Shown one piece after another: positions 20,017 to 57,686 of a stretch of 64,000 nt of DNA; position 1 is the stretch's first letter, and every line of letters starts with the position of its first letter. The position numbers were made by a program, and so were the translations under genes. A model generated the notes under the pieces. That model worked only from the letters and a program-made list of their open reading frames with translations, was not told the DNA's origin and searched no databases. Origin of the DNA: Oculina patagonica (lineage: Eukaryota); assembly GCF_052425735.1 (NCBI RefSeq), contig NC_135766.1, forward strand, positions 27,714,001 through 27,778,000, given 5' to 3'.

Positions 20017-22754
20017 AGGACAGTAACAGAATTCCAGAGTCCTTCTTTGGGAATCTACATGTAGATGATGAAGACAGGAGGTTATTTGATGAAACTTTTA
20101 TTCACAAGTCAATTGGGGAACAAGATGATCTCGAAGAAGGTTTATACCATGAACAAACATTTCATAATGCTAGTCAAGAGGTATGGGATGATTTGTTGGA
20201 GGAAAATGTTTTGGAGGACCTGGATGAATCAAACTTTCCTGGAGCAGTTGAGACCGATCCTGACTCATTTAACAGGAACATCCTTATGAACTGGCTGCTT
20301 CTATTCATCTGTTACTGGTGGACATACTGTAACATTGCTGACCGTGGAATTGAAATGCTTCTGAAATTCTTCCATGCATTTTTTACTGTGCTATCAGAGC
20401 GAGTACCCTGGATGACATTTTTTGCTGCAGCATTCCCTTCAAGCTTATACATGCTAAAGAAGTACTTTGGTCTGCATAAAGATTGTTTCCAGAAGTTTGT
20501 TGTATGTCCAAAGTGCCATTCTTTGTATAATTATGACTCTGCTTATGAGACAGTAGGTGGCAAGCATCTGTCAAAGAAATGCTCCTACGTGGAATTTCCA
20601 AACCACAAACACAGAGCACACCGAAAGCCATGCAATGAAGTCCTGTTAAAGGAGGTCAAGCTTCAAGATGGAAAACTTAAACTGTACCCAAAAAAGGTGT
20701 ACTGTTACAATAGTGTTATTGAAACATTAAAGCTCTTTCTTCAGCGTCCTGGTTTTTCATCACGATGTGAACTGTGGAGGGAAAGGGAGAGCACAAGCAT
20801 ACAGAATTTATTGAGTGATGTGATCCATGGTACTGTCTGGAGAGATTTCAAAGGCCCAGATGGGTCACGCTTTACGAGCCATCAACGCAACCTAGCTTTA
20901 ATGATGAACGTTGATTGGTTTCAGCCGTTCAAACATTCCCCGTACAGTGTAGAAGTCATTTACCTTGCCTTAATGAACTTGCCTCGTGGAGAGAGATACA
21001 AAAGGGAGAACATTATTGTTGTTGGAATTATTCCTGGCCCTAGTGAACCTTCAAGTCTCAATCCCTATTTAGTTCCCCTTGTTTTAGAACTGAAAGAGCT
21101 GTGGGAAGATGGAATTGAGGTTTGTCATTCTGGCTCACCTAGGATACCAGAGAGATTTTTTGCTGCTGTCTTGTTAGTAGCCTGTGATGTCCCTGCAGCA
21201 AGAAAATTGTGTGGTTTCTTGGGACATGGTGCCAGAAGAGGCTGCTCAAAATGTAAAAAGGAATTCATTCCTGGTGAAAATTTTGGCATGAAGATGAACT
21301 TTGGGGGATTTGACAGTTGTATGCCACGTACAAATGTAGAGCATCGCAATGAAGCCCAAGAAATACTTGCTGAGGACACGTATCAAGGACGAGAACGTAA
21401 GGAATCAAAATATGGTACAAGATACTCTGAACTTATGCAATTGGAGTACTTTGATTGCATCAGATTTACTATAATTGACCCGATGCACAATTTATTCCTT
21501 GGAACCGCCAAGCATCTGATGAAAAATGTTTGGCTACCAAATAAAATTTTGAAGCAGAGTGATCTCAAGTCTATCCAAGAATTGATTGACAACATGAAAG
21601 TACCATCCAACATGGGAAGAATCCCAAACAAGATTGCATCAAATTTTGCTAGCTTTACATCTGACCAGTGGAAGTTGTGGACTGTTGTTTACTCTGAGTT
21701 TGCTTTAAAAAAGTATCTTCCATCTGAAGACTACAAACTGTGGCTCTTGTTTGTGAAAGCTTGTCGCATATTAACTTCTCCTATAATAACGTTTCGTTCC
21801 CTTGCTTTGGCACATTCATCACTCATGCAATTCTGCAAGAAATTTGAGACTAAATATGGACAGTTGGAAGTTACTCCTAACATGCATCTGCATTCCCACC
21901 TAATCAGCTGTGTTGTAGATTATGGGCCTGTGCATAACTTCTGGCTCTTTTCATTTGAACGATTTAATGGTGTCCTTGGAGACTTTAAGACCAATCAAAG
22001 GGCAGTCGAAATTCAATTAATGCGAAAGTTTCTACGGGACCAAGACATCAGGGATATTCCATTCCCATGTCTATTTAAGGAACGACTTGGAACTGTCTTC
22101 AGTCAAATGAAGACTTCTGTAATGGATCCTATTCATGATGTCAGTTCTGCCGCAGAGCACTTTTCCCTATCAGAGGGCCCAGTAACAAAGGGAAACCTTT
22201 GGTTTGACATTGCATTATTTTCTTGCATATCTCCACACAGAATAGATTTGCTTGATGATGATGAACTGAATTTTCTTTTGCAATCATATTCAACATTTCT
22301 TGAAGGAGTTGAATTCCAAAATGGAACAGCTATATTTGACCGCTATGCAGGAGTTGAATTTTTGGGAGAGCGCTATGGCTCGCTCGACTCAAGAAGTGAG
22401 CGGTCTTCCTACATCATTGCTCCCTGGGTAGGAGTAAATGGAAACATTAATCCAGCCACATGTAATGCGAGGCCTGGTGTAGTGAGCTACTATTTGAAAC
22501 AGAATGTTTTAATTAATGGAGAATGGAGAACTCTCATTATGGCCAGAGTTGCGTGGTTTCAGGAACATCCTGAGAGATACATGCATCAGAGTGGGACCAC
22601 AGAGATATGGTGTAAAGACATCTTCGAACCATTAGGCCCAGCCTCCTTTATTCCTGTCCAAAGGATTCAGAGAAAATTTGTTGGAACTGTCCAAAAGTGG
22701 AAAAGAGAAAATGTTCTCTTTGTTTTGCCACTTGAAAGGAAAATGTACTTGTGA
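20017..22754 (+). CDS. CACTA/EnSpm transposase (Transposase_21-type DDE). Main exon from the acceptor at 20017; probable first exon at 18840 (CxxC..SRST..RH zinc motif).
   Basis: Motifs LMMNVDWFQPF, CDVPAARKLCG, IIDPMHNLFLG, TPNMHLHSHL, GPVHNFWLFSFERFNG. Uninterrupted ORF of more than 850 aa. Confidence 0.92.
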
Positions 22755-26844: not shown

Positions 26845-29800
26845 TTACTTAACCACTCGGCTTAGGTAGTCTGCTCCAACATTGTCTGATCCCTTGATAG
26901 CTTCAACCTTCAGGTTATAGCTCTGAAGAAAGATCGTCCAGCGCATAAGACGACTGTTCACGAACTTAGCACTGTTCATGTACTTGAGAGGCTCGTGATC
27001 TGTCTGCAGTACAAAACGTACTCCATACAAGTATAGATGAAATCTCTTGATCCCCCACACAATGGCTAAACACTCCTTCTCGATAGTAGAATAATTCCGC
27101 TCCGCATTGGACAGTTTCTTGCTAGCGTAACAAACTGGAAACAGCTTTCCTTCGTGCTCTTGCATTAGAACAGCGCCAATGCCATTATCTGATGCGTCAG
27201 TTCTCAAGTAGTACGTCTTGCTAGGATCAGGAAGATGCAGAATTGGCGTGCTTGTAAGGTGTGCCTTGACTGACTGATAGGCTCTCTCCTGGGCTTCACC
27301 CCACTCCACTCTGTTTGGCTGGCCCTTGCGTGTTAGGTCCGAGAGGGGAGCTACCACTGCAGCGAAATTTGGGATGAAATCTCGATAGTATCCGGCCAAT
27401 CCCATAAACGAACGGATCTGCTTCTTGGTGCTAGGTCTTGGGGCGTCTCTAATCTTAGCCACGTTATCCTCATGAAGTCCTACTAGACCACACTGCAACT
27501 GATGACCAAGAAACTCAACACTGTCTACGCCAAAAATGCACTTGCTTGGTCTGACTGTCATCCCGAACTGTAGTAGTCGCTTGAATAGCTCACGAAGGGC
27601 TTCGAGATGCTCCTCCCACGTGCGGGTGTGGACTAGGATATCGTCCCAGTAGAATTCGACGTTTGGCAGATCCTTCAGTAATCTTTTCATGGCGCGTTTA
27701 AGGGTTGCTGCGGAATTAACCATCCCAAATGGCATTTTCAAGAACTCATACAACCCATCAGGCGTTACAAAGGCTGTCTTCGGGATATCTTCCTCCGGTA
27801 TGGTTATCTGCCAGTATCCTTTGCTAAGGTCAATCTTCGAAAAGTACTTGTCACCGTTTAATTTCTGGAAAAGCTCCTCTGCAGTTGGCATTGGTTCAGG
27901 ATCAAATACAGTTAGCTTGTTTAACTTTCTGTAATCAACGCATACCCTGTTCGTCCCATCCTTTTTCTTCACAACAACAACGGGTGACGAATACGGCGAA
28001 TTAGATTCTCTGACCACGCCCATCTTAATCATATCGTTAATATCCTCCTTAAGAGATTCTCTGAGGCTGTACGGAACAGGATACGGCTTAGATCTGACTG
28101 GCTCCTCTGACGTAAGCTTGATGTGGTGCTGAACCAAGTTCGTGGTACCAGGCGCTTCGGTGAATAGACTCGAGAACTGGTGTGCCAGGTCCATAAACTC
28201 ATCTCTTTGGTCAATTCTAAGATTGGGTCCTGTAGTCACGTCATGGATAGACTCCTTCGGTACATATCCTCCAATCTCCAGGAAGTCGGCTTCAACTTCT
28301 GTCTCCTCAGTCTCAGCCTCAATTGCCACCGCTGACACTTCTGCTGGCTCCTCTCGCTCAAAATACTTCTTGAGAAGGTTGACATGGTAAACTCTCTCTT
28401 TGCCCTTGACTTTGACCTTGTAATCGTTAAGGCCTACAACAGCGCTGACTTCAAAAGGGCCTTTCCACTGCATTAGCAACTTGTTGTGGTCAGTTGGCAG
28501 TAATACAAGTACCTTGTCCCCTGGCTGGAGCTTGCGGACCTTCGTTTTGCGGTCATAGTAGTGCTTCCCTTTCTGCTGGGATTTCTGCAACTCACTGTGG
28601 GCAAGGTTGAGAGTATCTTCTAGCTTCTCGCGCAGCTCGAAGACATACTGGTAACTGTTCTTTACTTCTGGTTCTTCTACTTCTTTCGTCCACAGTTCCT
28701 TCAGAATGTACATGGGTCCTCTGACAGCTCTCCCATACAATAGCTCAAACGGTGCAAATCCTGTAGACTCCTGGGGAACTTCACGGTAGGCAAACAGCAG
28801 CGGGTTGATGTAGCGATGCCACTGCTTTGGCTGCTCACTGCACAATCTTTTCAGCATTAACTTCAGTGATCCATTAAACTTTTCGGTCATACCATTACAC
28901 ATGGGGTGGTACGGAGTTGTCGTCAGCTGCTTGATGCTCAAGAGACGCATTACCTCCTTCATACATTCAGAGACAAACTGTGTTCCCAGATCGCTAAGGA
29001 TCTCTTCCGGTACTCCAAGGCGGCTGAAGATGTCTACTAGGGCTTCTGCAACGGTTTCTGTATCAATGTTCTTCAACGGGACAGCTTCTGGGTATCGAGT
29101 TGCATAATCCACGAGCGTCAGTATGTATCTGTGACCTTCCTCGCTTGGTGGGCTTATCGGACCAATCAGGTCGATTGCTACTCTCTTAAACGGCTTGTCA
29201 ATTATCGGCATCTTCTCCAACGGAACTTTGGGGACTGACCCCTTTGGTACGGTCTTCTGACATACATCACAGGATTTACAATGTCGCGTGACATCTCCTT
29301 GGATACCAGGCCAGTAGAACGCAGCCTGAATTTTGTCAGCTGTCTTCTTTATGCCCATGTGTCCACCCATTATTGACCCGTGAGCTACATCCATGATTTG
29401 GCGTCTCAACGGGGTTGGAACCAGAACTTGTCTCACGGGCTTTCCACTATTTACGTACGGGTGCTTGTAAACTCGATACAGGACTCCGCTCTTTCGCTCA
29501 AATGAGATCTCAGCTTGGCCCTTCACTCGAGTGTCATCGCGGTCCCAGTACTTCTTCAGACTCGCATCCTCACGCTGCAACTGCATAAGCTTCTCTCTAT
29601 CTACTATGGGACTCTCTGATGAACTTGGCACCTTCAATGGGGTATGTTCTCCGGCTTTCTTAGCTTGACCTCTAGTGGTCACGGCACACGCTTCCTGCCA
29701 GCTGGGGTCTGGGTCATCTGCGGCTCTTGCACCAGGCACATTACCAACGATAAGGTCATAGATCGCATTGGGAAGGCACTGTGCTTCAACTTCTCCTGAC

Positions 29801-30228
29801 AGGTAAGGGGTGTCCACAGTGATCTTTGCAATAGGTACTTTTCTCACAGTATTGTCTATAAGCAGCATACAATTGAAGTCACCAGTGTACTGCTCCTCTG
29901 AAACTAACTCCTTCTTTACTACAATACCACTGCAACCAGTGTCTCTCAAAACATCCACTGTCTTTTCACCCACTCTACCCTTTACAACAGGCATCTTGCT
30001 TCTAGCTCCAGTCAACGGCTCCACGCACGCATTGCTAAGCAACGGAATCCTTTTTCCACAGGCTAAAAGGAGCTGATCCTCTTCAATACAAGACTTGACT
30101 TCCTCTGGCGTAGCGTTTAGCTGGGGTGGCTGAACTAGACAGCCAGCACTCACTTGGTCACGTGGTGCTGCGGGTACACGAGGCTTACTCGATCCTCCAG
30201 CCTTCGGCAAATTCACTTTGAGAGACAC
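26845..30228 (-). CDS. pol: Pol region: protease - integrase - reverse transcriptase - RNase H
   Basis: LRDTGCS (protease); H..H..CxxC and DLIG/SDLG/GMTE (integrase); FYWDD (RT); TDAS (RNase H). Integrase precedes RT. Confidence 0.95.
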   Translation of the reverse strand: MSLKVNLPKAGGSSKPRVPAAPRDQVSAGCLVQPPQLNATPEEVKSCIEEDQLLLACGKRIPLLSNACVEPLTGARSKMPVVKGRVGEKTVDVLRDTGCSGIVVKKELVSEEQYTGDFNCMLLIDNTVRKVPIAKITVDTPYLSGEVEAQCLPNAIYDLIVGNVPGARAADDPDPSWQEACAVTTRGQAKKAGEHTPLKVPSSSESPIVDREKLMQLQREDASLKKYWDRDDTRVKGQAEISFERKSGVLYRVYKHPYVNSGKPVRQVLVPTPLRRQIMDVAHGSIMGGHMGIKKTADKIQAAFYWPGIQGDVTRHCKSCDVCQKTVPKGSVPKVPLEKMPIIDKPFKRVAIDLIGPISPPSEEGHRYILTLVDYATRYPEAVPLKNIDTETVAEALVDIFSRLGVPEEILSDLGTQFVSECMKEVMRLLSIKQLTTTPYHPMCNGMTEKFNGSLKLMLKRLCSEQPKQWHRYINPLLFAYREVPQESTGFAPFELLYGRAVRGPMYILKELWTKEVEEPEVKNSYQYVFELREKLEDTLNLAHSELQKSQQKGKHYYDRKTKVRKLQPGDKVLVLLPTDHNKLLMQWKGPFEVSAVVGLNDYKVKVKGKERVYHVNLLKKYFEREEPAEVSAVAIEAETEETEVEADFLEIGGYVPKESIHDVTTGPNLRIDQRDEFMDLAHQFSSLFTEAPGTTNLVQHHIKLTSEEPVRSKPYPVPYSLRESLKEDINDMIKMGVVRESNSPYSSPVVVVKKKDGTNRVCVDYRKLNKLTVFDPEPMPTAEELFQKLNGDKYFSKIDLSKGYWQITIPEEDIPKTAFVTPDGLYEFLKMPFGMVNSAATLKRAMKRLLKDLPNVEFYWDDILVHTRTWEEHLEALRELFKRLLQFGMTVRPSKCIFGVDSVEFLGHQLQCGLVGLHEDNVAKIRDAPRPSTKKQIRSFMGLAGYYRDFIPNFAAVVAPLSDLTRKGQPNRVEWGEAQERAYQSVKAHLTSTPILHLPDPSKTYYLRTDASDNGIGAVLMQEHEGKLFPVCYASKKLSNAERNYSTIEKECLAIVWGIKRFHLYLYGVRFVLQTDHEPLKYMNSAKFVNSRLMRWTIFLQSYNLKVEAIKGSDNVGADYLSRVVK

Positions 30229-31295
30229 TTGGCAATTTCTCGCTTCATGTCCTTGCCTTCCACACTAGAAACACAACCTTGATACGGCTTGACAGTTGGC
30301 AGCTTTATGCCCTCGACCATTGCACTTGTAGCACTGTACCTGGCTAGGATGAATGGGCGGTTTCTTTGCGTCATCATCCTTTTGGGGTGGGGCTGGTGGT
30401 CTACTTCGTCCACTACTAAACACGTGCTTTCCATGAGCTTGTAAGTACTGGTCAGCAATCTGGGATATCTGTTCCAGTGTCTCTGGAGCCCTTTCACGTA
30501 AGTGAATGGCTAGTTCCTTCGGACATGAATTGATGAATTGCTCCTTGACTATCAAATCTCTTAGGCCATCAAAGCTCTTAGTGGTCTTAGAGAGTTCGAC
30601 CCACCGCATTAGATATGTACTCAAGCGCACAACAAACTGATCAGGACTTTCATCAATCTCAGGCTTAGATACTCTAAATTTATGACGGTAGCCGTCCTCA
30701 GTTAAATCATACCTCTTCATCAGTGCCAGTTTCATTTTATCGTAATCCGTAGCGGCCTCCTCTGACAACCGTGAATAAACATCCAGGGCGCGTCCTGTCA
30801 ACAGAGCACTAAGCTTTGTAGCCCAACCATTCTTCTCCCACTTAGCGTTCGTCGCAAACCGTTCAAAACGCTGGAGATAGGCATCGAGGTCATCCTTACC
30901 GTCCACAAATGACGGTAGTTTAGGGGTCTTGGCTCGTTCCTCTTTGTTATTGTTCGGTTGTGCGGGGAAATGTCCATCTCCCGCCAAACGTGCTAGATCT
31001 AACTCATGCTGTCTTTTCGCGGCTTCGATCGCTTCTCTCTGTCTCAAAAGTTCCACTTCCCTTTCCATTTTTCGGAGATCGCGTTCCTGGCGCCTTGCTT
31101 CTCTTTCATCTTCTTCTTGCCGACGTTTCTCGTCTCTCTCTTCGGCTTGTTGTCGACGTCTCTCTTCTTTCTCCTCTTGTTGTGTTCTTTTTCTCTCTGA
31201 AGTCTTTCCTCTTTCTCCTCTTGTTCTTTTACGAATTTCAACAGCTTTTCTCCTTCGAGTCCAAACTTTTCTCCCATCTGAATAAACTTCTCCAT
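30229..31295 (-). pseudogene. gag: Gag (coiled coil, SCAN-like capsid, two CCHC knuckles) with a frameshift and a nonsense codon
   Basis: The ATG 31295 frame (MEKFIQMG..) switches to the 30265-31407 frame near 31185. A TAG at 30267-30265 falls inside the second knuckle (CF*CGRQGHEARNC), in frame with pol. Confidence 0.85.
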
Positions 31296-32091
31296 TGCTA
31301 AAGACGCTTAAAAGTTTACCACAAAATAATCGAAGCAAACAATCTTCACAAACGCGACTCACTTGTAATTCGATTATCCTCGACGATAAGTTCCACAAAC
31401 CACACACTTCGAATTAATTTGTTTCTTTCCTGCGATTACGGTAGTAAATAAACTCTTCGTTCTTGTGCTCCACTCACACACGGCAAATAGTCAAACAAAC
31501 AATCCACACAATTACTTTCGATTCTCCGGCTCGACGATAAACTCGACAAATCGACACAAACCACACACCTTGAAAGAAACTGTTCCTTTCTAGCGGTTAG
31601 GTTAGTAAATAAACACTTCTTGTGCTCTACACACAGCAAATAATCAAAACAAACAATTCTCACAGATGCCGCTTGCTTGTCCTTCGATTCTCCTCGACGA
31701 TAAACTTCACAAAATCGCCACAAACCACACAACTTGAATAAATTTGCACCTTTCCTGGTTACGGTAGTAAAGTAAACGCTTCTTATGCTTCACTCCCGGA
31801 CGGGCCCCCAATGTTACGAATGGATTCGGTTTGGTGAAGTAAACGTTTACCAGACTGAACGCAGGATTCTCGGTAACACAACAATTTTACTCAATTCCAG
31901 CTTAACATGTCGCACCCTTCGACAATCAACTCAAAAAACACTTCTCGTCTCAAGTTCTTCTTGGAAAGTCTCTATCACGTGGCCTAAGCGAAAGTCTAAA
32001 AATAAACATCCTCGTGGGAAAATACGTCACATGGACAATGTCACGAACAATGTCACGCTCAGTTTCGGAAGTAACACAATTTTTTGTAACA

Positions 32092-43085: not shown

Positions 43086-43319
43086 GAGGCCCTGCCAGGG
43101 AAAATTCCGACAAGCGACATGGCCCAAAAAGTATAGCGACAGCACATGAAATAAAATCGCGACAAATGGCAACCCTTGTGGAAAAACTTAGATTCCGACA
43201 AGGACAAGTAATTTCCCTTCAATTTCACTACCGACAGCGACGTGAAGTTTGATAAAACAGCGACACGGCGCATTTTTAAATTTAGACAAGCAATACGGGT
43301 ACCCCCCTGGCAGGGCCTC
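43086..43319. mobile_element. Unclassified MITE
   Basis: 15-bp TIR GAGGCCCTGCCAGGG. AATAAT on both flanks. Internal GCGACA repeats. Confidence 0.7.
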
Positions 43320-43351
43320 AATAATGAGGCAGAAAAGTTTAGCTAACATAC

Positions 43352-44609
43352 CATTTAAGCTTTCCACTAAATCCTGAATCATCTGTTTAAATCTCTCACA
43401 TTCATTGCTCCAAGAGTAAGTTTTATTGTAGTTCTCTCTGAGCAGCTTGGCATTGTATTCTCTGTCTTGTGGACTTTGATTGGACAGTTGCTGGATCCTC
43501 TGTGCCCACTCGTTAGCATCATCTGATTCAACAATAACAGACTTTCCACCGTCTACTTCTTCTAAAGCTTCAGCTATTCCAGATTCACCAGCAACAAGAA
43601 CAGGAATACCAGCAGAAATGGCTTCCAGGGCAACCAACCCAAACCCTTCTGTGCGTGAAGGTAGCGCAACCATGTCTGACTCAAAAAACATCAGCTTAAG
43701 TTCATTTTGTTCATTACAATAACTACGGATTGTTAATTGGTTGCGGTTTATGCGTGTGTTGTCAAGAAACCATTGTTCAATTTTTCGGTGTTCACCAGGA
43801 GATGAGCCAACAAATGTCAGCTCAAACATCTTGTCAAGGGATCCAATGGCGTTTGCAACAATATCATAACCTTTAAGAGTACGATCTTCAAAGGTAGCTC
43901 GACCAAACAGAAAGACATTAAATTTCTTTACGTCTACTGATCTGTCTTTCACCAGCTGTGATGATTCAATGTAAAACTTTTCAATAATCCCAGGAGTGAT
44001 GATCTCTACCTTAACATTTGGGAGACTTCTGCTGTACTTCTGTTGTAGTCGTGAACCCACAGCAACAACTAAATCTGCTGCTTTACACAGTTCAATTTCA
44101 CGTTTATGTTTCTTCTCATTCTCTTCGATTGTATCGAGTGAAGCACTTTGTGTTACTTTGTACTTTCCAAGGTCTTCACAAAATACATGAACAAAATGCA
44201 CCCACTTGCACTTTGAAGCTTTGACAATGCAATAGGCAGGAGTCCCAAATTTCCTTCCATGACCGATCACAATGTCAGGATTTGGAAGTTCCGGTGGTGG
44301 AATTTGCAACCAATCTATTGGATCGGTTGATCCGGGAATATTTCGAGCAGTGATTAAATTCACTCCATGTTGTCTGGCGTCTTCTCTACCCAGCTCATCG
44401 CTTTGCGAGACGTAACAGTGAACTTTGATGCTGCTTTCACTCGTTGCTTTTGCCAGATTAATAGTAAATTCTCTATTGAAAGTGGATAGACCACCCTTTG
44501 AAGACTTCCACTCATCGCAGAGAAACATGACATCGATATGCTCGGGATTTTTCTGTCCCTCGATGTTAATACTTGCTGCATTCGAACTTTCAGTTTGCTT
44601 GCACGCCAT
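43352..44609 (-). CDS. GT-B fold family 4 glycosyltransferase (Glycos_transf_1, MshA-like) exon of the coral immune-associated type
   Basis: EWKSSKGGLSTFNRE, E.ELCKAADLVVAVG, FGR..FED.LKGYD and PSRTEGFGLVALEAISAGIPVLV (EX7E). Ends at a phase-1 donor AATG|gtatgt. The ORF tail beyond 43352 is intron/MITE read-through. Confidence 0.9.
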
Positions 44610-45038
44610 AACGCGCTTTTCTTCATTAGTAAATGAATCCTACTCTGTTGAAGAGTAGCTTATTCGTACATTTTAGAGCAACATGAACATCTAACTATTA
44701 TTTTGTTGATTCATTCGCGGAAGTCCTGTGAGAGGCTGAGAAAACCTCGTCCCCAGGGTCTACTCCACTTTTACGCTGGCGAAACGCACGTTCTTGGGTA
44801 TAAAAGCATCCATGTTAGATCCACCAAGCGTCCCGAAGGCCGCCGGGCCGCGGGCCTGCTTTTAGCAAAACCCCCGATACAACGGGTGTGCAAATGAAAC
44901 GATGCCGAACAAATTGTCCTCAAACATGGATGGCGGAAGTTTAACTGCATGGGAATATTTCATAAGAGCCGAGAAACGGTATAAGAAAAAACCGACCATT
45001 TAGCTGACTTTTTAGTCTGTTTATGACTTATCCGATAG

Positions 45039-45449
45039 TATCGGCGTACGGCCCGGGAGGCGGGGGGGGGGGGGGGGGGGGGTGCTGCAGCCCCCCCAAA
45101 TTTTGGGCACCTCAGATTTTTTGGGCAGCAAAGGAAAATTTGGGCAAAGCCAGTTTTTAAGAATAGTATTGTAACGTCCATTTAACCTAAAGCCAGTTAA
45201 CTAAATTCACATGAGGCAGACATCTTCGGCCGTCAAAATGGTAGAGACAGCTATTTCTTTTAAGTTTTATGAGCTGATTTGATAGATTCTTATGTAACAA
45301 TTTTTCACTTCATTTGTAAGCCTATGTTAGTGCATCGTATGAGCCTTATTTCTTCTTGTCTGTTTCGTAAAAATTTAGGCAACTTGCGAGAATTTTTTGG
45401 GCAAATTTCTCACCGCCCCCCATGGCAAAAATTTGTCCGTACGCCTATG
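45039..45449. mobile_element. MITE with 7-8 bp TSD (hAT/P-like)
   Basis: TATCGGCGTACGG ... CCGTACGCCTATG. Flanks TCCGATAG / TCCGATAC. Confidence 0.65.
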
Positions 45450-45511
45450 TCCGATACAATGAATGCATGATTACTTCTGAGTTTCCAAGAGGTCACCGAG
45501 CTTGACTAGGA

Positions 45512-45606
45512 TTCTTGGAAAGCCCGGATGTCTTTCTCAGAAACAAACAATATGGTGTAAACAGTGAAAATGGGACTTTCCCCGATATCAGGTTGCGAAA
45601 GTGAAA
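45512..45606. promoter_or_regulatory. Clustered STAT (GAS x2), NF-kB and IRF/ISRE motifs in the divergent intergenic region
   Basis: TTCTTGGAA 45512-45520; TTCTCAGAA 45534-45542; GGGACTTTCC 45572-45581; GAAAGTGAAA 45597-45606. Confidence 0.6.
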
Positions 45607-46422
45607 ATGCCGGACTGACTTTCGTATTAAACAGAGTCATACAGAGACAACGCGGTTGAAGTTGGACAAGAAAGAGCTAGTAAACAAATCCATAAGCTGT
45701 GTTGTCTTTGTACAGACTCATGGGAGCCAACAGTAGCAGGTTAGAACGACGATTTTGCTGGCTTATTTTGCTTTCAATGTAACATTTATCAGTTTATGCG
45801 TATGATTTTAAATGGCTGCGTCAATTCATTTGGGGATATGGTAAAAAGGCAAAATTTACCTAAACTTTTACTATAATTCACTACAAAGAAGGAGCACTTT
45901 TATTTTCGCACTATTACATGGCATGGATATTGAAAATAAAGCATAATTGTTCCACGAACACAGTGTTACAATCATTTCCTCGTTTGTCTTTAATCTTGGT
46001 TTCCCGAACTTTCGATCTCTCGAACCGTTTCGATAATTCGAACCAAACATGTTTTCCCATGGATTTGCCTCAACAATTCGGACACAGCAATTTTAATCCT
46101 GATTTGCCGAACCAATTTTCGTTAATTAGCCTTGGAGGTTGTCGAGAAATCGGGATATCGATTCCACTGTTGTTGATTGTGGAGTGATGCAAAGCTAAGT
46201 AATGCAAAGCACTCTCTCATGTTTACAACTTAAAAATCAGACAAGATTCTGAAACTCAATGATCCTTTTAATACAACACTGACCACGAGGGTTGAAAATG
46301 TTCAGTGTCACGCTCTGCTATCATTTCATTTGTCATGTTTTTCGCGCTCGGAGCAGTCACAGGCACCTCGACTAAGGCCTGAGTTCCATGTACTATTGAA
46401 TGGATGTGCTTCGGTGGTTTCA

Positions 46423-46490: not shown

Positions 46491-46994
46491 GTGGTTTCAG
46501 TGAATGTTTGGAGTCTGATTGATATGTAAAATATAACCCAGTATCAAAACAAACAGCAACAAATAAACATACCAGCTTATAATCTTTCATGGGTCGTAGC
46601 AAAACGAAACAGCTTATGGACTCTGGGAATTTTGAATCGAGTGATGGACAAAATGAAAATCGAATACTCGAACGATTTTAGTAAGTCGTGCTTTTTTTCT
46701 CGGTGCCTTTAGCTTTAAAAATCATAGAAGTTTCTTGTTGTTATATATTTGTTACTTCCGGTGTACTCAAGACAATCGAAATTGAAAGTAATTTCAATTC
46801 AATTTCAATTATTTCAATTTCTTTTTATGGACCCTAACTAACAATCATCTCTATTTAGGTCCCAAGGGGTTTAACTCGCTGAAACCGAATTCGCACAATT
46901 GAAAGTGTTGGATTATCGATTTGAACGTTGGGATATTGTCGCCCTGGCCGTTTTAAGTTTGTAAACTAATCTGGCTTTTTCTTTTTTCTTGCAG

Positions 46995-49900
46995 TAACGC
47001 TCGCAAGAGTGGTGACAAGAACCCTTTACTACGCAATGATGAAGGTGAGTGCATTTTCTATGTAGCGTTAAAAATAAACAAATATCTTGTTTAGTTTCCA
47101 TTTTCCTTCGACCCTAATAGAATATTAAAGATAAATAATTTAACAAATGGTGAAAGGAATAAAAATTGGCACCAATGGTCACCTCAACCATAAATAGTTG
47201 ATTCATTACACAAAACATTAATTCTGGAAATACAATACTTTCCGGCCTCATTTAAAACCACATAATGTGCTTCTTTCATCTAGAAAATGTACTTATCCTG
47301 TGATGTAGCGTCTTCGCCAAAATGGAAAGTGATAATTGTTTTGAAATTAAATGTTTGATATAAATTATAGGTCAGTAAAAATTGATTAACTCTACCCAAA
47401 ATATTCACGGTTTTATGTTCATAGATAAAACCACCAAGGAGCAAAATAAGAACACACTCTCGGAACAAAAAGAGACAGAGACGCAGCTTTGCCAGCCGAG
47501 TAAAGATAAACCCAAAGTGGAAAAAGACATTTGCAGGAAATTTGAAGAGAACGACTTACAAGACGGTGCACAAGCTTCTGAGATAAAAACTATTGCCAGT
47601 TCTGATGCAACTGAAAAGCTACAATTGGATATATCCGATTCTATATATTGGACATATCCTAAATTGCATAATTCAGGAACCCCCAGTGCGACAACCAAGA
47701 GTTCAATGGATCATGGTTTAGATGATATCGTTAAAGAGAACGACGTAATCGTTTCTTTTCCTAGTACTACGTCAGTAGAGTCTAAAGACATATCACATTA
47801 CGTCGCAGATGAACACGAATATAAAAAAAATGACGACTGTGGTGGCATTGGACATGCTTATAGGCAAAGTGCTAGCGACCTTGTAAGCGATGGCAGTGGT
47901 TGCATTAGGCATGCTGATTGTAAAGGTCCTGCTGACCTTGGTGGCGATGACAGTGGGACCAGTGGTCATGAAAGCCAGAAAGAGGCCTGTGACGGTTTAG
48001 ACGACGACAGTGGTAGCACTAGTCTTGTTGACGGCCAAGGTGTTTCTGACCGGGATGGCAATGACAGTGGTAGCACTCGATCTGCTAAAGGTAAAGGAAC
48101 TTGTAGTCTTAGTGTACTTGACAGTGGTAGAACTGCACATGCTTATAGTAAAACTACTTGTGACGGTATTGACGATTGTAGTGGCAGCATTCCATCAACA
48201 AATGGGCAAGTTTTTAGTGACCGTCGTAGCCTCAGCACTGGTAAAACTGCGCCAGCTAATGGTAAAATTGATTTTACCAGTGTTGGCGATGGCAGTGAAA
48301 CCAGTGGACCAACCACTGATCATAAACATGCTTCCAGCTGTGGTGGCGATGGCAGTGGTGGTATCGGACTTGTTATTGGTCAAGATAACAATGACCCTTT
48401 TGCCAATGCAATTGGTGACATTTGTCTTGATGGTGATAAAGATGCTTGTGATCATGTTGACGATGACTGTGGAACTAGTGAACTCATAGATGATAAAGAT
48501 CCTTCTGTCCGTAGTGGCGCCAGACTTGTCGATGTTCAATGTACTTATACTTGTGACCATGGTGGCGATATCAGTGGTAGTATAAGACATGCTGGTGGTG
48601 GAGATGCTTTGGACGGTGTTGGCAATGGAAGTGACACCAGTGGACCTGTAGACATCAAGGATGCACCTGGCTGTGGTGGCAATGGAATTCGTGACATTGG
48701 ACCTGCTGACGTTCAAGATGCTGTTGACCGTCTTGGTGATAGCGTATAACAGGAGATGTTAGTAATGACAGAAATGAGCGTGCCCGTGTTATGGCTGCCG
48801 GCCCTGCTACTGCCACAAGTGATGGAGATGCTAATGGAAGCGATATTCGTATGAGTAACAGCGTTGATATCGGTTACTATGACAATGATTGTTATGACGT
48901 GGCTTCAGACAACTACGACAGTAGTGATGACGTCAGTTGTTCATTTGAAAGAAAAGTGGAGTTAAATGATGATGACGGTGCTTGCAATAGCTACTTCAAT
49001 TACTCTGACGACACTGAAAACATTAACTGGTGCGAAGAAGAAGGAGAAGAAGAGGAAGAAGGCTATTGGAATAATGAATATGAGGGTGACAGCTACGAAG
49101 CCCAGTCGCCAGTTCCACTACCAGTATCTTTCTTACCATATTCTTGTTCTGAAGATTACGAAAAAGTAAACAGTTGGAATGGAAAAGAAGAGGACGTAGA
49201 AGAGGAAGAAGGGGAACAGCTAGAACAAGAAGGAGACTATTGGGATGAGGAGTATGAGGGTGACAGCTACACAACGCACTCTTCAGATCCAGCAGCAGGA
49301 CCACTCTTACCATTATCTTCCAGTAAAGATTACGAAAGAGTAAACAGTTGGAATGAAGAAGAAGAAGAAGAAGAAGAAGAAGAAGAAGAAAAAGAAGAAG
49401 AAGAAGAAGAGGAGGAGGAGGAGGAGGAGGAGGAGGAGGAAGGAGAAGAGGAAGGAGACTATTGGTATGACGAGTATGAGGATGGCAGCTACAAAACGCA
49501 GTCGTCAGGTCCAGTAGCAGGACCACAGTTACCATTATCTTCCAGTGAAGATTACAAAAGAGTAAACAGTTGGAATGAAGAAGAAGAAGAAGAAGAAGAA
49601 GAAGAAGAAGAAGAAGAAGATGAAGAAGAGGTTGAGGAGGAGGACGTAGAAGAGGAAGAGGAAGGAGACTATTGGAATGACGAGTATGAGGATGGCAGCT
49701 ACTTGGACGAAAGTGGCGTTCATGTAGGCATTTTTTTCAATGTACATGGCACGAAGAAATCACAAACTGGTTCAAAGACACGTACAAGAACAACTGCTAC
49801 TAAAACGTTGGATGGAAATGTATTCTTGGTCAGCGGACTAAGCGAGAGAACTACAGAGGACGGATTACTGAACTTCATTGAGGTGGTAAGTGGTGGAGAA

Positions 49901-52900
49901 GTCAAAGACATCAGAATGCTGAAACAAGGCAATGCGTTGGTTACCATGACAACACAAGTGCAAGGTATGTGGATAGTGTCCTCAATCAATTTTTCAATAG
50001 CTCAAAATAAAACCGGTGCAATTAACAGAAGTCAAGTTAAAAGTCATGTTAAGTCCTTTTTTCTTTTTATTTCTTACATCTACCCTTCTCCCTCTAGAAC
50101 TTTTAGTACTTTTAGAACCTTTAGTGCACACCTTCCCAATTTTTGAGATGTTAAGCCAAGACTATACAGTGAAAAAGAAGTTTTTTATATGGTGTTTGAG
50201 TTAAACGTCTACCACATTCTTTTGCACTGTTAATTTTTGCGGTGCTGGGGTATTTAACCGGAATGAACATTAAACAGCCTCAAACATCTATCTTCATTGA
50301 TTAGAAAATTAGCCTTTCTGTAGAAGACCTCCTAAATGATTAGGCCCTTCTTCTTAGAATGACTTGCAATCTTTCATTCATTTACATCGGGTTTTTTCCT
50401 TACGTTTCCACTTCATAACTTTGTATATGTGTTGTAAAAGAACTCTTTCAGAAAACAATTTTAATGTGTTGTCACAGATGTTGCAAAGATGAAAGAGAAA
50501 TGCGCAAAAAGGTCATTGGACAGCAGCACAGTCACAATCGAGATTTCCCCTGCCCCGACAAGTATATTGGTCAGCGGCTTATCACCCACCGCTTCTCACG
50601 ATCTCGTGAGATTGTACTTCGAGAGTGCTCGCAGTCAAGGTGGTGCAGTGGAAAAAGTTCTCTTTACAGGCGAGAATGGGGAAGCTGTTGTTGTCTTTGA
50701 AGATACTCAAGGTAAAATTACTTTCATCGGGGTTGGAATAAAACAATACTGATGTAAAATTGGCCTTTAGCTACGAACTTTTAGTGAGACACGCCCAGCT
50801 TGCTCTTGTAATTTATCGCTTACCTTATATTGTAATACATATTCACAGCTATGACAAAAAATTATTTTACTTTTCTCCGGTTTCGGTAAGGTTTAAGTTA
50901 CTAAAACCTTTAAAGTCATTAGTAATTAATAAAACACAAGTATGAGTAAAGTACTTTTTTGGTTCAGCAGATTATGTGATATTCCTTATCTCCTATTATT
51001 ACACTTAGAGATAGAAAAGTTTGTTTGTCTATGCTTGCCAAAAAGCACGATGCCTATAAGCTGAAGTTCTAAGTCTTTACAAGCAAACAAATGGTTTATC
51101 AGGCTTATCGCCTAGGCGACTAGGAGTATCGCTACTTTTCTTGAATGGATGCATATGGGTGCTAGTGATTTTCAGATTTCCATGACAACTCTGTGGTGTC
51201 CCTTTATACTTCTGTGTGGTGGGCGCTGTGAGACTTGAATGTGTTGATTCGACCCAACCGCTTGGTCCGAAGTCTAATGTTCTAACTATCAGACCACCTC
51301 GTCTCCCACATGTTGGCCTTAATTTTATTTTTTAATTTTTTTTGTAGATATGAAACGGGTCTTAGCGAGGCAGGAAGAGCACCCACACGTTTTGGACGGC
51401 AAACAACTGACAGTGTCAGTCTTCCATGAAGTTCTTCAAGACTTCATCGCAGAAGTAGCAGATCAAACAAGCCCTAGCCCCGTTCACGAAAAGTTTGATG
51501 AAAAGCCAGTACCTCAGCAATCAACACAAAAAACAACACAGCGGTTTCATTTGGTTGTAGATCCTGACATAATGGAGTATGTCCACGAAACATCGCATGT
51601 GGATCGGTTGAGAACTTTGCTGGAGGATGGAAGTTGTGTTATAGATTGGTCGCGCGGCAGTAAGCATGCTGCAATCGTGTACGATGGGAAAACGGAAGGT
51701 AATTCCGGCCAGTGCGTAGATGCCGTGCAGTCGTTTCTCGACAAGTTCGTTAAGTGTGACGTTCAAATAGAAGAAGAACTGTGGAACACTCTAGTGGTAG
51801 ACTCAATGTCTGCCGTTCACGACTGTTTGGGAGGTGATCCCCCGCCGCTTGTGAGAGGTATCACAAAGGAATTGTCGTTTTATCTGAGGATCGTTTCACT
51901 GAAATCCGAAAAGGAGTCCCATGACGAAAATCTGAAGGAGGTATTAGAGGAAATCTACTGTCTGGAGAAGAGAAAGAACTATCGCACTGAAAAATTAACG
52001 AACCTCTCAGAGGAAAGAATTCAACTGCTTCGAAAAACAAACTTCAAACAAAAGCTTCGAGATGAATTCAAGGAACTGACGGTGGAGTTTGATGACGAAA
52101 ACAGAGAAATCTTCTTGGAAGGGCCTGAGGAAGACGTGATAAATGCCAAAATAAGATGTTGTGTACAGGAAGCTAAAATTACTGAAAAACAATTGCATCT
52201 TCCTAAAGGTGTCTTGGAGGTGCTGAATACAGCTGAGGGATTACAAGTAGTTAAAGCCGAAATGGCAGAAAATCAGTTAGAAGCGGTGTTTGTGCTAGAG
52301 GAGGACGAATTCAATCCGCGCGACGTTACTGCCAAGGTACTGGGTATCTCACCTGAGCACGCCCACAAGGCATCCGATCTTATAAGCAGTTTGACAACAG
52401 AAATGGCTCTAAAAATTGAAGAAAGAGATCTCGTCTTGACAACAACGTCTGAATGGGAACAGATCTGTGCCGATATCACAAAGGATGGCAATGCTGTTAT
52501 TCAGAGAGATGAAACTGGTAGAACGTGGGTCGCCGGGTTCTCAAAGGATGTTATTTATTCTGTGAAAAGGTTGAACTCGTTTCTAGAAGAAAATGCTTCA
52601 GAGGCTTTGACAGAAGAGTTTACTTGCCCTTTCAAAGATGCCCGGATTTATCTCAGGAAATATCGCGAGAAAGATCTTATTGCTGCAGAAAAGAGATTGG
52701 AGGCATTTGATGTTAAAATTGTCAACGGGGAAGATGCTAAGACATTCGTCATAACAGGCCAAAAAGAAGGATTAATCCTTGCAAGACGTATGCTTGATGC
52801 ACTCCTTCGTGGAATGTTGACTAAGGACATGAAGCTGCAACAGCCGGGTCTTCGCAAGTTCTTTTCAAGTGGCAAGGGAGATGATCTTGTCAAAAAGGTC

Positions 52901-55900
52901 GAAAAAGATCACGAATGTTTAGTTCGAGTTGAGAAGATTTTCCCGAAGATCAAACGAGAGCGGTCTAAGGCAATATTGGTCGAGTCAGATTCTATGGAGA
53001 GCGAGGATGATGAGACAGTTGATGTCGAAGAAGCGTCCACCTCCCTTCCATCGAAGAGTACGTCTTCATTGTCCGTGACAGCGCAAGGGCACAACATCTC
53101 ATGGAAGACTGGAAACATTGCACAAGAAAAGGTAAGTTTTAAAAACGGATGTCTAGTAAGATAGATTTGATTGCAACGTTGTATACACGCATTCCGCGTG
53201 GCTTTTTTATCTGTGAATATGAATATCCTTCAACAGAGTATATCTTTGTTGTAAAATATAATCATAATAAGCGAGTGGTCGTCTCTCTCTGTGCGCTCAC
53301 TTCCAGGCTCTTCTAGCTACCACTCAAGAGACCCTTGAAATAGTATAACTCTAAAAAAATATGTGTATTGTCTCGGGTTGCTATTACATGTGCGATAGAC
53401 TAACAACTAATCTGAGGCACTGCAAAGATCTCTGTAGAGCTACGTCATCACCTTATTTCTTTTTCATTTGCAATCTCTAATGTCCCTGATCAAATGAGGG
53501 ATAAATTATTTGAACGCAAGAATGAAAGTAGTAAAGTCTGTCATCCTATACAACTTTGAAAAAAAGACAAGGTAGGGAATGTTATATTATCCTTCCGTGT
53601 TTTGCAAGTCGGTGTAACCTTGAGTCATTTACTTTCAGGCTCACACAGTGGTGAGTTCTCAAGGAGCATGCGCTAGTGCAATTAAGCGTTCCGCTGGCCA
53701 AGGAATGCTACCACAAACGCCACCTGCTGGGGAAATTTGTGTTTCTGCAGGATTCAAACTGCCATGTCAACACGTGATTCATACACGCTGTTCAGAGTGG
53801 AATGGAGGCGATGGAGAAGTGGTATGTATACGTTATTGGGAATGCCCTGACAAAAGGTAGCACTTTTGAAACACTAAGCTAGCAATTCTCGTCCCCAGAA
53901 TCCATGATCCTCTGGTCTGCGCCAGGGCAGAGGTCTCGATCCTTGGCGCAGACCAGAAGGACCGTGGACTCTGGGACGAGAATGAGAACTAGCACATGAT
54001 GGGAAGTATTGTTCGAGCGAGCAAATAGATAAGAATTTACATTTTGATAATTGCAATAAAATGGTGTTGTTCCGCTCCTTTCCTCCCAGTTCTTTCTTTA
54101 AAAAAATAGGCATAAACAGTTGCCTCCGTATTTCTATTGAATTAATGAAGCATTTGTGTTGGTTGAGGATAGTTTGAAAAAGCGGTGCGGAAAAAAAGTC
54201 GAACATTTCACGTCAGTTTCTCCAAACGCACACATACATGCGTTTATCGGATATAACTTGATCGAAACGTGGAAGTTTTCTATCTTCTAAATATAAAAGC
54301 TTGAAGTTATAGATCTACATGGGACAAATGAATGTTGTGGTTTAAATTTTTCTTTGGGATTAAACTTCTCAAACCTGTTTGATTTGTAGTTTTGTATTGT
54401 CTCAAAAACAAAAGGGAAATTAACATCAAACTAGTTTTAAAAGATCAAACCAAATATAAATTTAAACCACAACATAAACAAAAAGACAATATCGTCGTTT
54501 TATTTTCTTGTAGTTGTTAATTAACAAGTTTATTTTACTTGATTCTAGACATTGAGAGCTATTGTTCGGAAGTCCCTTTGCAAGGTTGATGAACTCAAAG
54601 GAAGCTCCATTGCTTTTCCTGTGATTGGAACTGGGAATTTACAATTTCCTCGAAATGAAGCTTCAAGAATCATGTTAGACGAAGTGGTCAACTTTTGCCA
54701 TAATAATCCACATTCCTCTGTGAAAGATATTCGTTTTGTTATCTTTGACCAAGATCAAAGCCTGATTGCCGCATTTGAGCAGGAGATAAGCTCTTTTCAG
54801 ATAAGCCTTGGAATGTCTCTTCCAAACGAAAACGAACTCACATGGTGGCGAAAGGTCGAGGTTGTTCAAGGTAACCTGACACAAGAGAGAGTCGACGCCA
54901 TTGTCAACATCATAGGTAAGGACATGGACTTGTTCAAGGCTGGAGAACTAAGCAAAGCAGTTGCCAAAGCCGGTGGAGACCAAGTGATTCAAGAATGCAA
55001 GAGTCTGGGACAGCAATCAGGTGGGTCGGCCGTGACGACAAGTGGCGGAGATTTACCAGTGCGTCGCATCATCCATCTAGTGCCAGAATCCTCGAACAAA
55101 CAGCACCTCCGGACCTGTCTTGAAAAGTGCCTTCTCCTCGCCAGTCAGAAGGGTTTCAGATCCATTGCAATTCCTGCCGTTGGAACAGGTGCGTACCACA
55201 TGACAGGCACAGATTCTGCGCAACTAACCTTCCAAGCTTTGAGCAACGTAAGAGGAAACTGCTCAAACCTGTCCCGAATCAGAATAGTTATTTATCAACG
55301 TGACATGCTTGGAGCCTTCACTCAAGAGTATCAACGCGTCATGCAGTTAGCAGGACAAAATTCAAATGTTCCGGCTCCAGCAGCGAAGACGGCGACAACG
55401 AAGAAAACAAAATCAACGAGGAAAGTTTTAGCAAAGAAGAGAAAGCGCCCGCCAGTGAGGTCATCACAAAGCGAGTCGACTGTCAACATCTCAGTCACTG
55501 CTGCGAATGAAAGAGTTGTAAAAAGCGCATTAGAATCTTTGAAGACAGGGTTCTCTGAGGCCTGCACTAGTCAAGAGATTTCCAACGAATGTGTGAGCCA
55601 GCTGTCGGACAGGCAGGTCAGCGTCCTGCTCCAAAAGTCTAAAGAGCGAGATGTTGAACTTAAGATCGAAACTGCTGTGAATCGACTTGAAGTTCGCGGT
55701 GACGCAAATGATGTTACAGTTATGATTGGGGAGATCTGGCGGGAACTAAACGAAAGAGACAGGAGAACAAGAGACCGCGAGCACGCCAAGCTGTTGGCCG
55801 GTCACGTGGAATGGCGGTATGCTATATTTGGCAAAACCAATCGTTTTGGTTCAACCAGGAACGCTAAGATCGAGGAGGCGTACAGTAAAAATCATCGTAG

Positions 55901-57686
55901 CGTAAGAGTTAATATTCGAGGTGATACGTTTGAACTGAGCTTCAAGGACAACACAGGAATAGGACTTTTGTCAGGAGTGGATATAACAATCAGCCGCAAG
56001 GTACTGGGTCCAAGTGAAGGTAAGAAATGTCGCTCGATGTTGTAGGAATTTTTTTTGTGTGGAATGAAACTTTGCTGTGAAAGTTTGTTTTCTTCCTGGT
56101 CCAATTTCTCTCCGGCCCTGGATTGCAAAAGTCTTAAACACTGGGTGGTTATTTGTAAGGATATTGGTTAGAACATAACAAACCATGTTATAGGCACCAC
56201 CTTTGAACGAGCGAAAAAAAAAAAACGATTTCAATTAACCTCCAGGGAGACGTTATTTTACGTCTCATAACTGTTGGGGGGGGGGGGGTGCTTAAGAAAG
56301 GGAGGGAGTTTATAAAATATTTCCAATTCGCATTGTCATGCTCTATTTATTTGTTCAAAGTTTCTATTAAAACAAAACAAAACAAAACAAAACAAATGGT
56401 GATTGATATTTACCGTCAATTGCAAGTCAAACTCACAATTCACCTGCTGTAGTAAAGGGAGGGAGGGAGGGAGGCTTATTTGCAGTTTAATCCCAGAACA
56501 TGCAGGATCCCTTTACTGATGGTGTTAGGCTCCTTTCCTGAATGGGAGTTGAGTAAAAGAGAGAGGATAATTATTGCAAGGGGATAAATGGATAAAAATA
56601 AAGTGTTTCCATTTCTTAACTTATCGTTTGCTTTTTGCTTTTTAATGTAATCACAGGACTGATTTCACTTCCTGGTCACTGGGCACCAATGCCAAAACAG
56701 CGTAACGGGAATGACGTCACGGTGCATACAGTAAAACTCGCTTCCCACTCGACTGAGTTCCAGAATGTCGTGCAAGCGTTTCAAAGGACCGCGGGCTCAG
56801 CAGTCATCAGAAGCGTCGAACGAATTCAAAACCCACTGCTGTACCAGGCATACCAGCTGAGAAAACAAAAAATGGACAAAGATAACAGTGGCAACAATGA
56901 ACGGCAGTTGTTCCATGGGACGGCTTCACGAAACGTAAAGAAAATCAATTCCCAGGGATTTAACAGAAATTTCTCTGGTGTCGCACACGGTAAGTTAGAT
57001 TTAGTGTAACATCGTCGCTCAGTTACAGTTTTGACTCCCTCATAAAACAGACCGTTTACAGCGTCTACTTTCAACGAAAAAAACGCGTTAGAAACGGCGA
57101 GCGAACACGGTGAAAGGAGCGTAAGCGCAAAACACGAGGGACTGGGGAATAAGAAGGAGAAGCAAGTTTTTTCCCCGCGTTCAACGCAGTAACAGCTAAC
57201 GTTCGAAGAAAAATACGAAAAAATAGATGGCTTTGAACAGTCTATCAAAAAAGATCATGAATACCAAAATAGTGATAGTTCCCATGCCAGGCTTTTTGCG
57301 TAGCCTTACCGGCCTTTTAATAATTAACAACAAGAGCTAGCTCGCGTGGTTTTTATTATTAGATATTTTGTACAGTATGTAAATAACACTTGCCCATTAT
57401 TTCCTCAGGAACCGCCCTGGGTAAAGGAGTTTATTTTGCGAGAGATGCCTCCTACTCAATGCGATACGCTGTTCAGGGTACCAGTGAGGGTAGCTTTATG
57501 TACCTTGCCCGGGTTCTGGTGGGGCGATATTGTCATGGCGGCCCTAAGTTGGTTGTACCTCCCCCGAGGAATCCTTCGCGACCGGAAGTTCTGTTTGATT
57601 CTGTGGTGGACGACACAAGTAGCCCAGGGATTTTTGTTGTGTTTTCCGACAGTCAGTGCTATCCGGAATACCTTATTTCCTTCTGA
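46995..57686 (+). CDS. PARP14-like: PARP14-like mono-ADP-ribosyltransferase, copy B. Exons 46995-47044, 47425-49964 (frameshift at ~48744), 50478-50711, 51348-53131, 53639-53821, 54549-56019, 56657-56989, 57409-57686. First coding exon is 45720-45739 or 46616-46680.
   Basis: All GT-AG junctions chain in phase. Two RRMs, a KH array, two macrodomains (SIAFPVIGTGNL; GNLTQERVDAIVN..SIAIPAVGTG), WWE (VEWRY..KIEEAY), and an ART domain (LFHGT, GKGVYFA, IFVVF..QCYPEYLI). Confidence 0.92.
47832..48780 (+). repeat. Coding degenerate 57-nt (19-aa) tandem repeat, about 16 units
   Basis: SGTSGHESQKEACDGLDDD / SGSTSLVDGQGVSDRDGND / SGSTRSAKGKGTCSLSVLD / SGRTAHAYSKTTCDGIDDC. Confidence 0.8.
49020..49705 (+). 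repeat. Coding acidic tandem repeat (~3.5 units) with (GAA/GAG)n poly-Glu tracts
   Basis: Unit VNSWN-(E)n-GDYW.DEYE.GSY...P....LPLSSS.DY. Confidence 0.9.
51110..51310 (-). mobile_element. Degraded tRNA-derived SINE-like repeat in an intron
   Basis: Minus-strand tRNA-like head GGTGGTCTGATAGTTAGAA...GGGTCGAATC. The body is related to a fragment at 63610-63675. Confidence 0.4.
53884..53983. mobile_element. Short palindromic MITE
   Basis: ATTCTCGTCCCCAGA...TGGTCTGCGCCA / TGGCGCAGACCA...TCTGGGACGAGAAT. Confidence 0.6.

Follow-up and report, generated by a model that had tools for sequence, protein, structure and literature searches.

Vertebrate interferon-stimulated gene (ISG) and primary-response promoters combine GAS, κB and ISRE/IRF-E sites, as at IRF1, GBP, CXCL10 and the PARP14/PARP9–DTX3L group, and PARP9 and DTX3L share a bidirectional interferon-responsive promoter. 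The human IFN-β enhanceosome (PRDIV-III-I-II) is compact and conserved, with an ATF-2/c-Jun site and with contiguous, overlapping IRF and NF-κB sites at invariant spacing. Cnidarians induce many ISG homologues without a known interferon. In Nematostella vectensis, promoters induced by poly(I:C) are enriched in STAT, IRF, NF-κB and ETS motifs (Lewandowska et al. 2021, PMC8476169), and the induced genes include a PARP14-like gene (NVE20880, log2FC ~3.7) and a ZNFX1-like gene (NVE19355, log2FC ~5.3; PMC8476169 supplement). In addition, Nematostella NF-κB binds a vertebrate-type κB site and activates κB reporters (PMC2751831). We find nothing on promoter motifs, PARP14 or ZNFX1 in Margolis 2021, a 2026 Nematostella immune-cell paper and a heat-stress paper, and literature searches for an induction of PARP14 in corals bring up nothing useful.

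We analyse a window of 64,000 nucleotides from the stony coral Oculina patagonica (contig NC_135766.1, positions 27,714,001 to 27,778,000; coordinates without a prefix refer to the window). An earlier note on this DNA described an interferon-enhanceosome-like motif cluster between head-to-head GT4 and PARP14-like genes. The 95-base stretch in question (45512–45606) is very probably a genuine promoter, old and immune-style, but probably not one shared with the GT4 gene. It is likely to serve the PARP14-like gene as a proximal promoter, conserved and of immune type, with STAT, ETS, NF-κB and IRF inputs. This kind of element is already known from vertebrate ISG promoters and from the Nematostella enrichment; what is new is an unusually well-resolved stony-coral case. 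The Nematostella result concerns the same motif classes, and genes of the same two kinds, as an enrichment over hundreds of promoters obtained with vertebrate matrices, whereas in the coral one promoter is defined down to its individual sites, their footprints across species and their fixed spacings.

Like vertebrate ISG promoters, the coral promoter groups these site types close to the putative start (within ~150 nt) of an effector gene of antiviral type, and the target is also a PARP14 homologue, with KH, macro, WWE and PARP domains. Unlike them, it carries an invariant ETS core between two GAS sites held 21–22 nt apart, its factor binding and inducibility are putative and, to our knowledge, no interferon is known in cnidarians as a signal for the GAS pair. 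As in the IFN-β enhanceosome, the IRF and NF-κB sites are held at a fixed spacing (23–25 nt). In contrast to the enhanceosome, STAT- and ETS-type sites are found instead of a conserved ATF-2/c-Jun site, the sites are not contiguous, the linker from GAS2 to the κB site ranges from 18 to >140 nt among species, and the target is an effector and not a cytokine gene. No AP-1/ATF site is conserved in the alignment, and the Oculina TGACTAG at 45503–45509 is not kept. The term enhanceosome-like therefore overstates the resemblance.

Sites, exons and repeats at the probable PARP14-like promoter

Sequence reading and a regex scan identify STAT-, ETS-, NF-κB- and IRF-type sites in the 95-bp stretch, and the four motifs listed in the earlier note are all present where it placed them. 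The first, GAS1 (TTCTTGGAA, 45512–45520), is a STAT-type palindrome. GAS2 (TTCTCAGAA, 45534–45542) starts 22 nt after GAS1, and an ETS-like core that was not in the earlier list (CCGGATGT, 45524–45531, plus strand) lies between the two. The κB site (GGGACTTTCC, 45572–45581, plus strand) is the sole strict κB 10-mer across the 64-kb window. The IRF-type site (GAAAGTGAAA, 45597–45606, plus strand) is located 25 nt past the start of the κB site, in the conserved context GCGAAAGTGAAA. Thus, consensus GAS, κB and IRF sites are clustered within 95 bp, as in an ISG-type composite promoter.

The cluster is followed by a TATA-like TATTAAA (45625–45631, plus strand), a candidate core promoter by sequence, which would place the TSS near 45655; TATTAAA as such is not kept in other species. 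The cluster ends 114 nt before the ATG at 45720, in agreement with the ~0.1 kb given earlier for a candidate PARP first exon, and a gap of at least 83 nt separates it from the first base that RNA-like contigs show as transcribed. The public runs are used as contigs, which show transcription from 45689 on but not its start, strand or level. The part of exon 1 contained in these contigs (45689–45739, plus strand) is joined to exon 2 (46995–47044) by the junction 45739>46995 in run X4, and exon 2 is joined to exon 3 by the junction 47044>47425 in run X1, both with GT..AG borders. The ATG opens a 20-nt coding exon that encodes MGANSS, a myristoylation-type start with G2. The further IRF-like motifs reported earlier (~46601, 46778–46789 and 46881–46889) are present, and all of them are in intron 1. 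One of them is ISRE-like (GAAATTGAAAGT, 46778–46789, plus strand; regex scan). The surrounding block (46714–46798) aligns at 76% to contig L010 of the closest species, and to that species only, with GAAATTGAAA kept at L010:1527.

Downstream, plus-strand ORFs from 47382 on encode PARP14-type KH, Macro, WWE and PARP catalytic domains, identifying the gene as PARP14-like. Exon 3 (47425–48749) encodes a long disordered N-terminal region, the frame of which closes at 48747–48749 in this assembly; GenBank model ACROYT_G032225 (464 aa, exons 1–3) ends there, at 48749. According to the alignment with L010, the N-terminal region continues in another frame (48767–50146) and ends in an RRM-like segment: a single 874-aa ORF of L010 aligns to 47439–48728 in one frame and to 48767–49969 in another. 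An RNA-like contig of 1710 nt extends from 47609 beyond 48700. An assembly indel, a genuine frameshift or a split of the gene could account for the frame break between 48728 and 48767 relative to orthologues, and the gene may accordingly be split, damaged or mis-assembled. The following exons encode the PARP14-type KH domains (51350–53164; PF23249, PF23248), the Macro and WWE domains (54552–56045; PF01661, E 4e-25; PF22005; PF02825) and the first part of the PARP catalytic domain (56635–57009; PF00644, E 5.5e-11), all on the plus strand. At least six PARP14-like paralogues surround the window (C9:27.62–27.87 Mb; KH-exon identity 26–42%), one of them inside it on the minus strand (3972–8393).

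On its upstream side, the cluster is close to a repeat. The segment 45441–45760 is single copy and matches only itself in the 529-Mb genome, and the adjoining segment 45216–45440 belongs to a high-copy element (at least 652 candidate copies, 87–94% identity). Therefore, the cluster is not part of the repeat. The earlier note had called the repeat a MITE; the repeat is real and ends near 45440, leaving the cluster outside, but its identity as a MITE is doubtful, as only a 9-nt terminal inverted repeat is seen by eye and a search for inverted repeats of at least 14 nt in it finds none. We also considered a transposon-derived (MER41-like) immune enhancer and rejected it: the cluster is single copy, and cross-species homology starts at 45481, outside the repeat. 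Elsewhere in the window, a tnp2-type transposase ORF is located at 20193–22754, and a Ty3/gypsy-type retroelement with minus-strand gag/SCAN, RT, RNase H and integrase ORFs at 26845–31407. Two DNA-like runs that cover the flanking single-copy DNA are without contigs of at least 95% identity over 45592–46143, a segment that may be divergent, polymorphic or filtered in those runs.

The motif cluster far exceeds chance. Defined as two GAS sites, one κB site (GGGRNYYYCC) and one IRF site (GAAANNGAAA) within 95 bp, it appears in 0 of 1000 order-1 and 0 of 1000 order-3 Markov simulations of the window, bearing out an enrichment over random background. In the 529-Mb genome, a strict κB site followed by an IRF site within 5–35 nt occurs six times (reversed-pattern control, two), a tandem GAS pair followed by a κB site within 10–40 nt occurs four times (control, one), and all four sites occur together at this locus only. 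Consequently, although the motifs are short (the window contains 43 GAS-like 9-mers and 14 IRF-like 10-mers) and repeats directly adjoin the cluster, it is extremely improbable that short motifs co-occur here by chance, or as a transposable-element fragment, with no regulatory function: none of the 2000 simulations gives the cluster, the region is single copy, and the cluster is syntenic and conserved across species in which neutral sites are near saturation.

Conservation across stony corals

A search with the N-terminal exon returns the Oculina protein itself only. Because the N-terminal region is disordered and fast-evolving, we reach orthologues through the KH exon. KH exons in other coral assemblies are 57–86% identical to that of Oculina, compared with at most 42% for the in-genome paralogues, indicating that they are orthologues. 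The orthologous loci are L010/L021 (ERZ25067872), L011/L017 (ERZ25878340), L015 (ERZ25067556), L014/L016 (ERZ26858540) and L012 and L013, which are two haplotype contigs of ERZ25067546. Identity to Oculina at four-fold sites of the KH exon is 76% for L010, 55–59% for the L011/L012/L014 clade and 48% for L015, indicating that neutral sites are far diverged.

The promoter is still alignable across species by sensitive blastn and multiple alignment. The module has the same order (GAS1, CCGGATG, GAS2 where present, κB, IRF, ATG) in Oculina, L010, L015, L017 and L012/L013. In the orthologues, the IRF site is followed after ~100–150 nt by ATGGGAGCnAAC...AG|GT, and ATGGGAGCnAAC at exon 1 is kept. The module is thus present in orthologous loci of four other coral species, and the cross-species alignment fits the earlier suggestion that the promoter is ancient, within stony corals.

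The sites themselves stand out from the surrounding promoter. In an unbiased ranking of promoter 10-mers, the five most conserved correspond to the ATG, the IRF site, the κB site, the ETS/GAS2 junction and GAS1. The four motifs of the earlier list have a mean identity of 0.89 against a promoter background of 0.55; none of 20000 randomly placed sets of four windows reaches this mean, and the excess persists with the three deep lineages alone.

Conservation follows the motifs base by base. GAS1 retains the TTCnnnGAA form in L010, L015 (spacer changed to TCG), L017 and L013. The ETS-like CCGGATG is invariant in 6 of 6 aligned sequences, with a mean identity of 0.97. GAS2 is kept in L010 (spacer C>G) and L015, and is lost from the proximal copy in the L012/L017 clade but retained in the upstream duplicates of that clade. 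While the TTC...GAA arms are constant, the free spacers change (TTG to TCG in GAS1, TCA to TGA in GAS2), a mode of change typical of binding sites. The κB site is identical in L010, L015 and L017. The IRF site is identical in L010, L017, L012 and L013 and carries a 1-nt insertion in L015 (GAAAGTAGAAA). The GAS-to-GAS spacing is 21–22 nt everywhere, and the κB-to-IRF spacing is 23–25 nt in all.

The κB site of L012/L013 follows a different course. At the orthologous position it has decayed to GAGACTTCCC, and an exact new copy of the κB 10-mer is located 41 nt upstream; an extra inverted IRF-type site is found as well, the new sites lying ~40–80 nt upstream. This looks like site turnover. The identity excess, the empty random placements and the turnover in one clade together indicate that the promoter sites are constrained and have been under purifying selection across deeply diverged stony corals. 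In L014/L016, neither exon 1 nor the module is found within 13 kb upstream, where a Pao-type retroelement sits, and the module would be either lost or displaced.

Two further variants concern the L012/L017 clade. A 4-nt insertion (CCGG) breaks GAS1 in L012 (L012:3490–3505, compared with L013:3625–3636), providing a natural site variant. In addition, the promoter and exon 1 are partially duplicated in tandem (L012:3180–3345, L017:7600–7760). In the upstream copy, the two GAS sites are 22 nt apart and are accompanied by a κB-like site and, in L012, by a degenerate exon 1 (ATGGAAGCC).

The GT4-conflict neighbour

The head-to-head neighbour is a GT4-conflict glycosyltransferase ORF of 473 aa on the minus strand (43188–44609; PF20706, E 7e-82), the product of which is a 100% match to ACROYT_G032223; an exact-protein look-up of this product gives no record. 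The cluster is 903 bp from the GT4 ATG (ORF start 44609), in line with the ~0.9 kb of the earlier note. The GT4-conflict family has at least 583 candidate loci in the genome, with tandem arrays at C9:1.5–2.2 Mb, on C4 and on C14. As at the PARP9–DTX3L promoter, a macro-PARP gene is placed head to head with a putative immune gene. In the coral, however, the partner is GT4-conflict, none of the orthologous loci examined has the pairing, and repeats make up most of the DNA between the two genes.

The earlier note proposed an ISG-type bidirectional promoter that co-induces both genes. A single promoter for the minus-strand GT4-conflict gene and the plus-strand PARP14-like gene would suit their head-to-head arrangement, in which 1110 bp separate the two ATGs. 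It would also be in keeping with the palindromic form of GAS sites and with the ability of enhancer-type sites to work both ways, and GT4 and PARP-domain genes are also near each other at C5:11.34–11.48 Mb and in coral contig L009. Such a promoter is nevertheless quite unlikely. By tblastn, no GT4 homologue is found in L021, L017, L012, L013, L015 or L016, with an upstream reach of 3–8 kb overall (7.6 kb upstream of the module in L021, 8 kb in L017). The 7.6 kb preceding the module in the closest species contain instead the 3′ end of a further PARP/macro gene in tandem; the upstream neighbour in L017 is an alpha-kinase gene. In the nearest GT4 paralogues (77–90% protein identity), upstream homology ends at 44696, ~90 nt from the ATG. 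Furthermore, ~740 bp of repeat-containing DNA (44700–45440), with a DNA-run depth ~30–400x that of single-copy neighbours, separate GT4 from the module. Finally, in the RNA-like runs that cover the PARP14-like exons, hardly any contig matches the 5′ half of GT4 at 95% identity or more, a weak indication, from contigs only.

The absence of GT4 from the orthologous loci and the repeat-rich 44700–45440 indicate that the head-to-head pairing is recent, in the Oculina lineage, and that the module evolved for the PARP14-like gene, GT4 being a probable lineage-specific arrival outside the ancestral unit. Of the earlier proposal, the ISG-type part is supported on the PARP14-like side, with its spliced exon 1 and conserved sites. 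The bidirectional part is not supported, as the pairing is absent in orthologues, and neither is co-induction of GT4, on the same grounds together with the ~90 nt of paralogue homology and the intervening spacer.

Two observations concern the GT4 side. A GT4 homologue locus on L009 was tried as a promoter comparison and set aside, its homology ending 76 nt upstream of the ATG. At 44714–44724, ~105 nt upstream of the GT4 ATG and just past the limit of homology with the GT4 paralogues, TTCGCGGAAGT contains an overlapping GAS site and ETS core.

Shared site vocabulary and probable immune-type regulation

A second promoter of similar composition is found in the genome. The region C4:22606470–22606568 (L018:5971–6069) is one of the six genome-wide matches of the κB+IRF pattern, which was derived from the PARP14-like locus alone. 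Within 100 bp it contains GGGACTTTCC, GAAAGCGAAA, GCGAAAGAAA, TTCTCGGAA, AGGAAGT and TTCTCAGAA, making up a κB site, two IRF-type sites and a GAS-ETS-GAS block in which the GAS pair is again spaced by 21 nt. This cluster is located on the 5′ side of a minus-strand ZNFX1-like gene, the first recognisable exon of which is 3.3 kb away and encodes the ZNFX1 domain (PF25396) and a helicase motif. The sites are arranged and oriented differently from those of the PARP14-like promoter, suggesting that the two promoters have a vocabulary in common but not a syntax. A pattern built from both loci matches these two only genome-wide; it is circular, and we do not count it as evidence. A short minus-strand exon (MDRKNVGRGRSGG...) begins 75 nt from the κB site of the ZNFX1-like promoter.

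For the IRF and κB sites, candidate factors are encoded in the Oculina genome. A domain search finds IRF DNA-binding domains at seven loci and the Rel-homology domain (RHD) in one gene, all above the cut-off. For STAT_bind, a family search of the genome at E 1e-5 gives no match, and at E up to 5 it gives two weak collinear exon matches at C7:18.35 Mb (E 0.006 and 0.4); introns account for the weak detection of the STAT gene. Two IRF DNA-binding-domain loci (C9:28029793–28057469) are on the chromosome-scale contig that contains the window, ~270–280 kb away from it.

The sites exist, lie upstream of a spliced exon 1, 83–114 nt away, and are constrained; the identity of the proteins that bind them and a pathogen-inducible output are predictions. 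The module consists of two rigid sub-modules: a tandem STAT-type GAS pair 21–22 nt apart with an ETS core between, and an NF-κB site followed 23–25 nt later by an IRF site and ending ~115 nt before the ATG. In the most likely mechanism, the sensing of nucleic acids or microbes would activate Rel/NF-κB and IRF proteins, which would cooperate with a STAT and an ETS factor and turn the gene on in infection or stress, in the manner of the switching at vertebrate interferon-stimulated genes.

Constraint is no proof of immune function, since cnidarian NF-κB and STAT have developmental roles too. The promoter could be conserved for a constitutive, developmental or general stress role, its sites being occupied by ETS and other factors, or by members of these same families acting outside immunity, and its likeness to ISG promoters could be superficial. 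Conservation reveals constraint and not the stimulus, the gene is contained in RNA-like contigs of several studies without a known challenge, and an ETS core, invariant here, is a common feature of housekeeping promoters. However, four immune-type consensus sites are jointly kept with motif-preserving substitutions, the ZNFX1-like gene has the same vocabulary, poly(I:C) induces the homologues of the two genes in Nematostella, and the promoters induced there are enriched in the four motif classes. We therefore regard a non-immune role as rather unlikely and favour an immune-type promoter of the PARP14-like gene.

It is possible, and we put it forward tentatively as a less than even prospect, that a pre-interferon ISG grammar is hard-wired in stony corals and shared by PARP14-like and ZNFX1-like antiviral genes, consisting of a tandem GAS pair with an ETS core and a κB-IRF pair at fixed spacing. 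If so, a STAT-activating secondary signal (a cytokine-like loop) would join primary NF-κB/IRF activation in cnidarians, and the regulatory logic of interferon-stimulated genes would be older than interferon. The locus bears on whether STAT, IRF, NF-κB and ETS factors cooperated on antiviral effectors before interferons. A promoter of ~100 bp with conserved sites defined to the base, and a second gene with the same vocabulary, provide a substrate for functional assays.

Other composites in the genome combine subsets of these sites. Four near-identical composites of a κB site and GAAATTGAAA are found at C1:5795409, 5875070 and 5902026 and at C1:22245234, with no recognisable gene among the ORFs tested; in L019, an ISRE-like AAAGTGAAACC is located directly upstream of such a composite. 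At C4:2132376–2132427 (L022:4977–5028), a tandem GAS pair and a κB site (GGGGATTCCC) are positioned ~60 nt upstream of a 228-aa bZIP_Maf ORF, and a second bZIP_Maf ORF is located 3.5 kb upstream.
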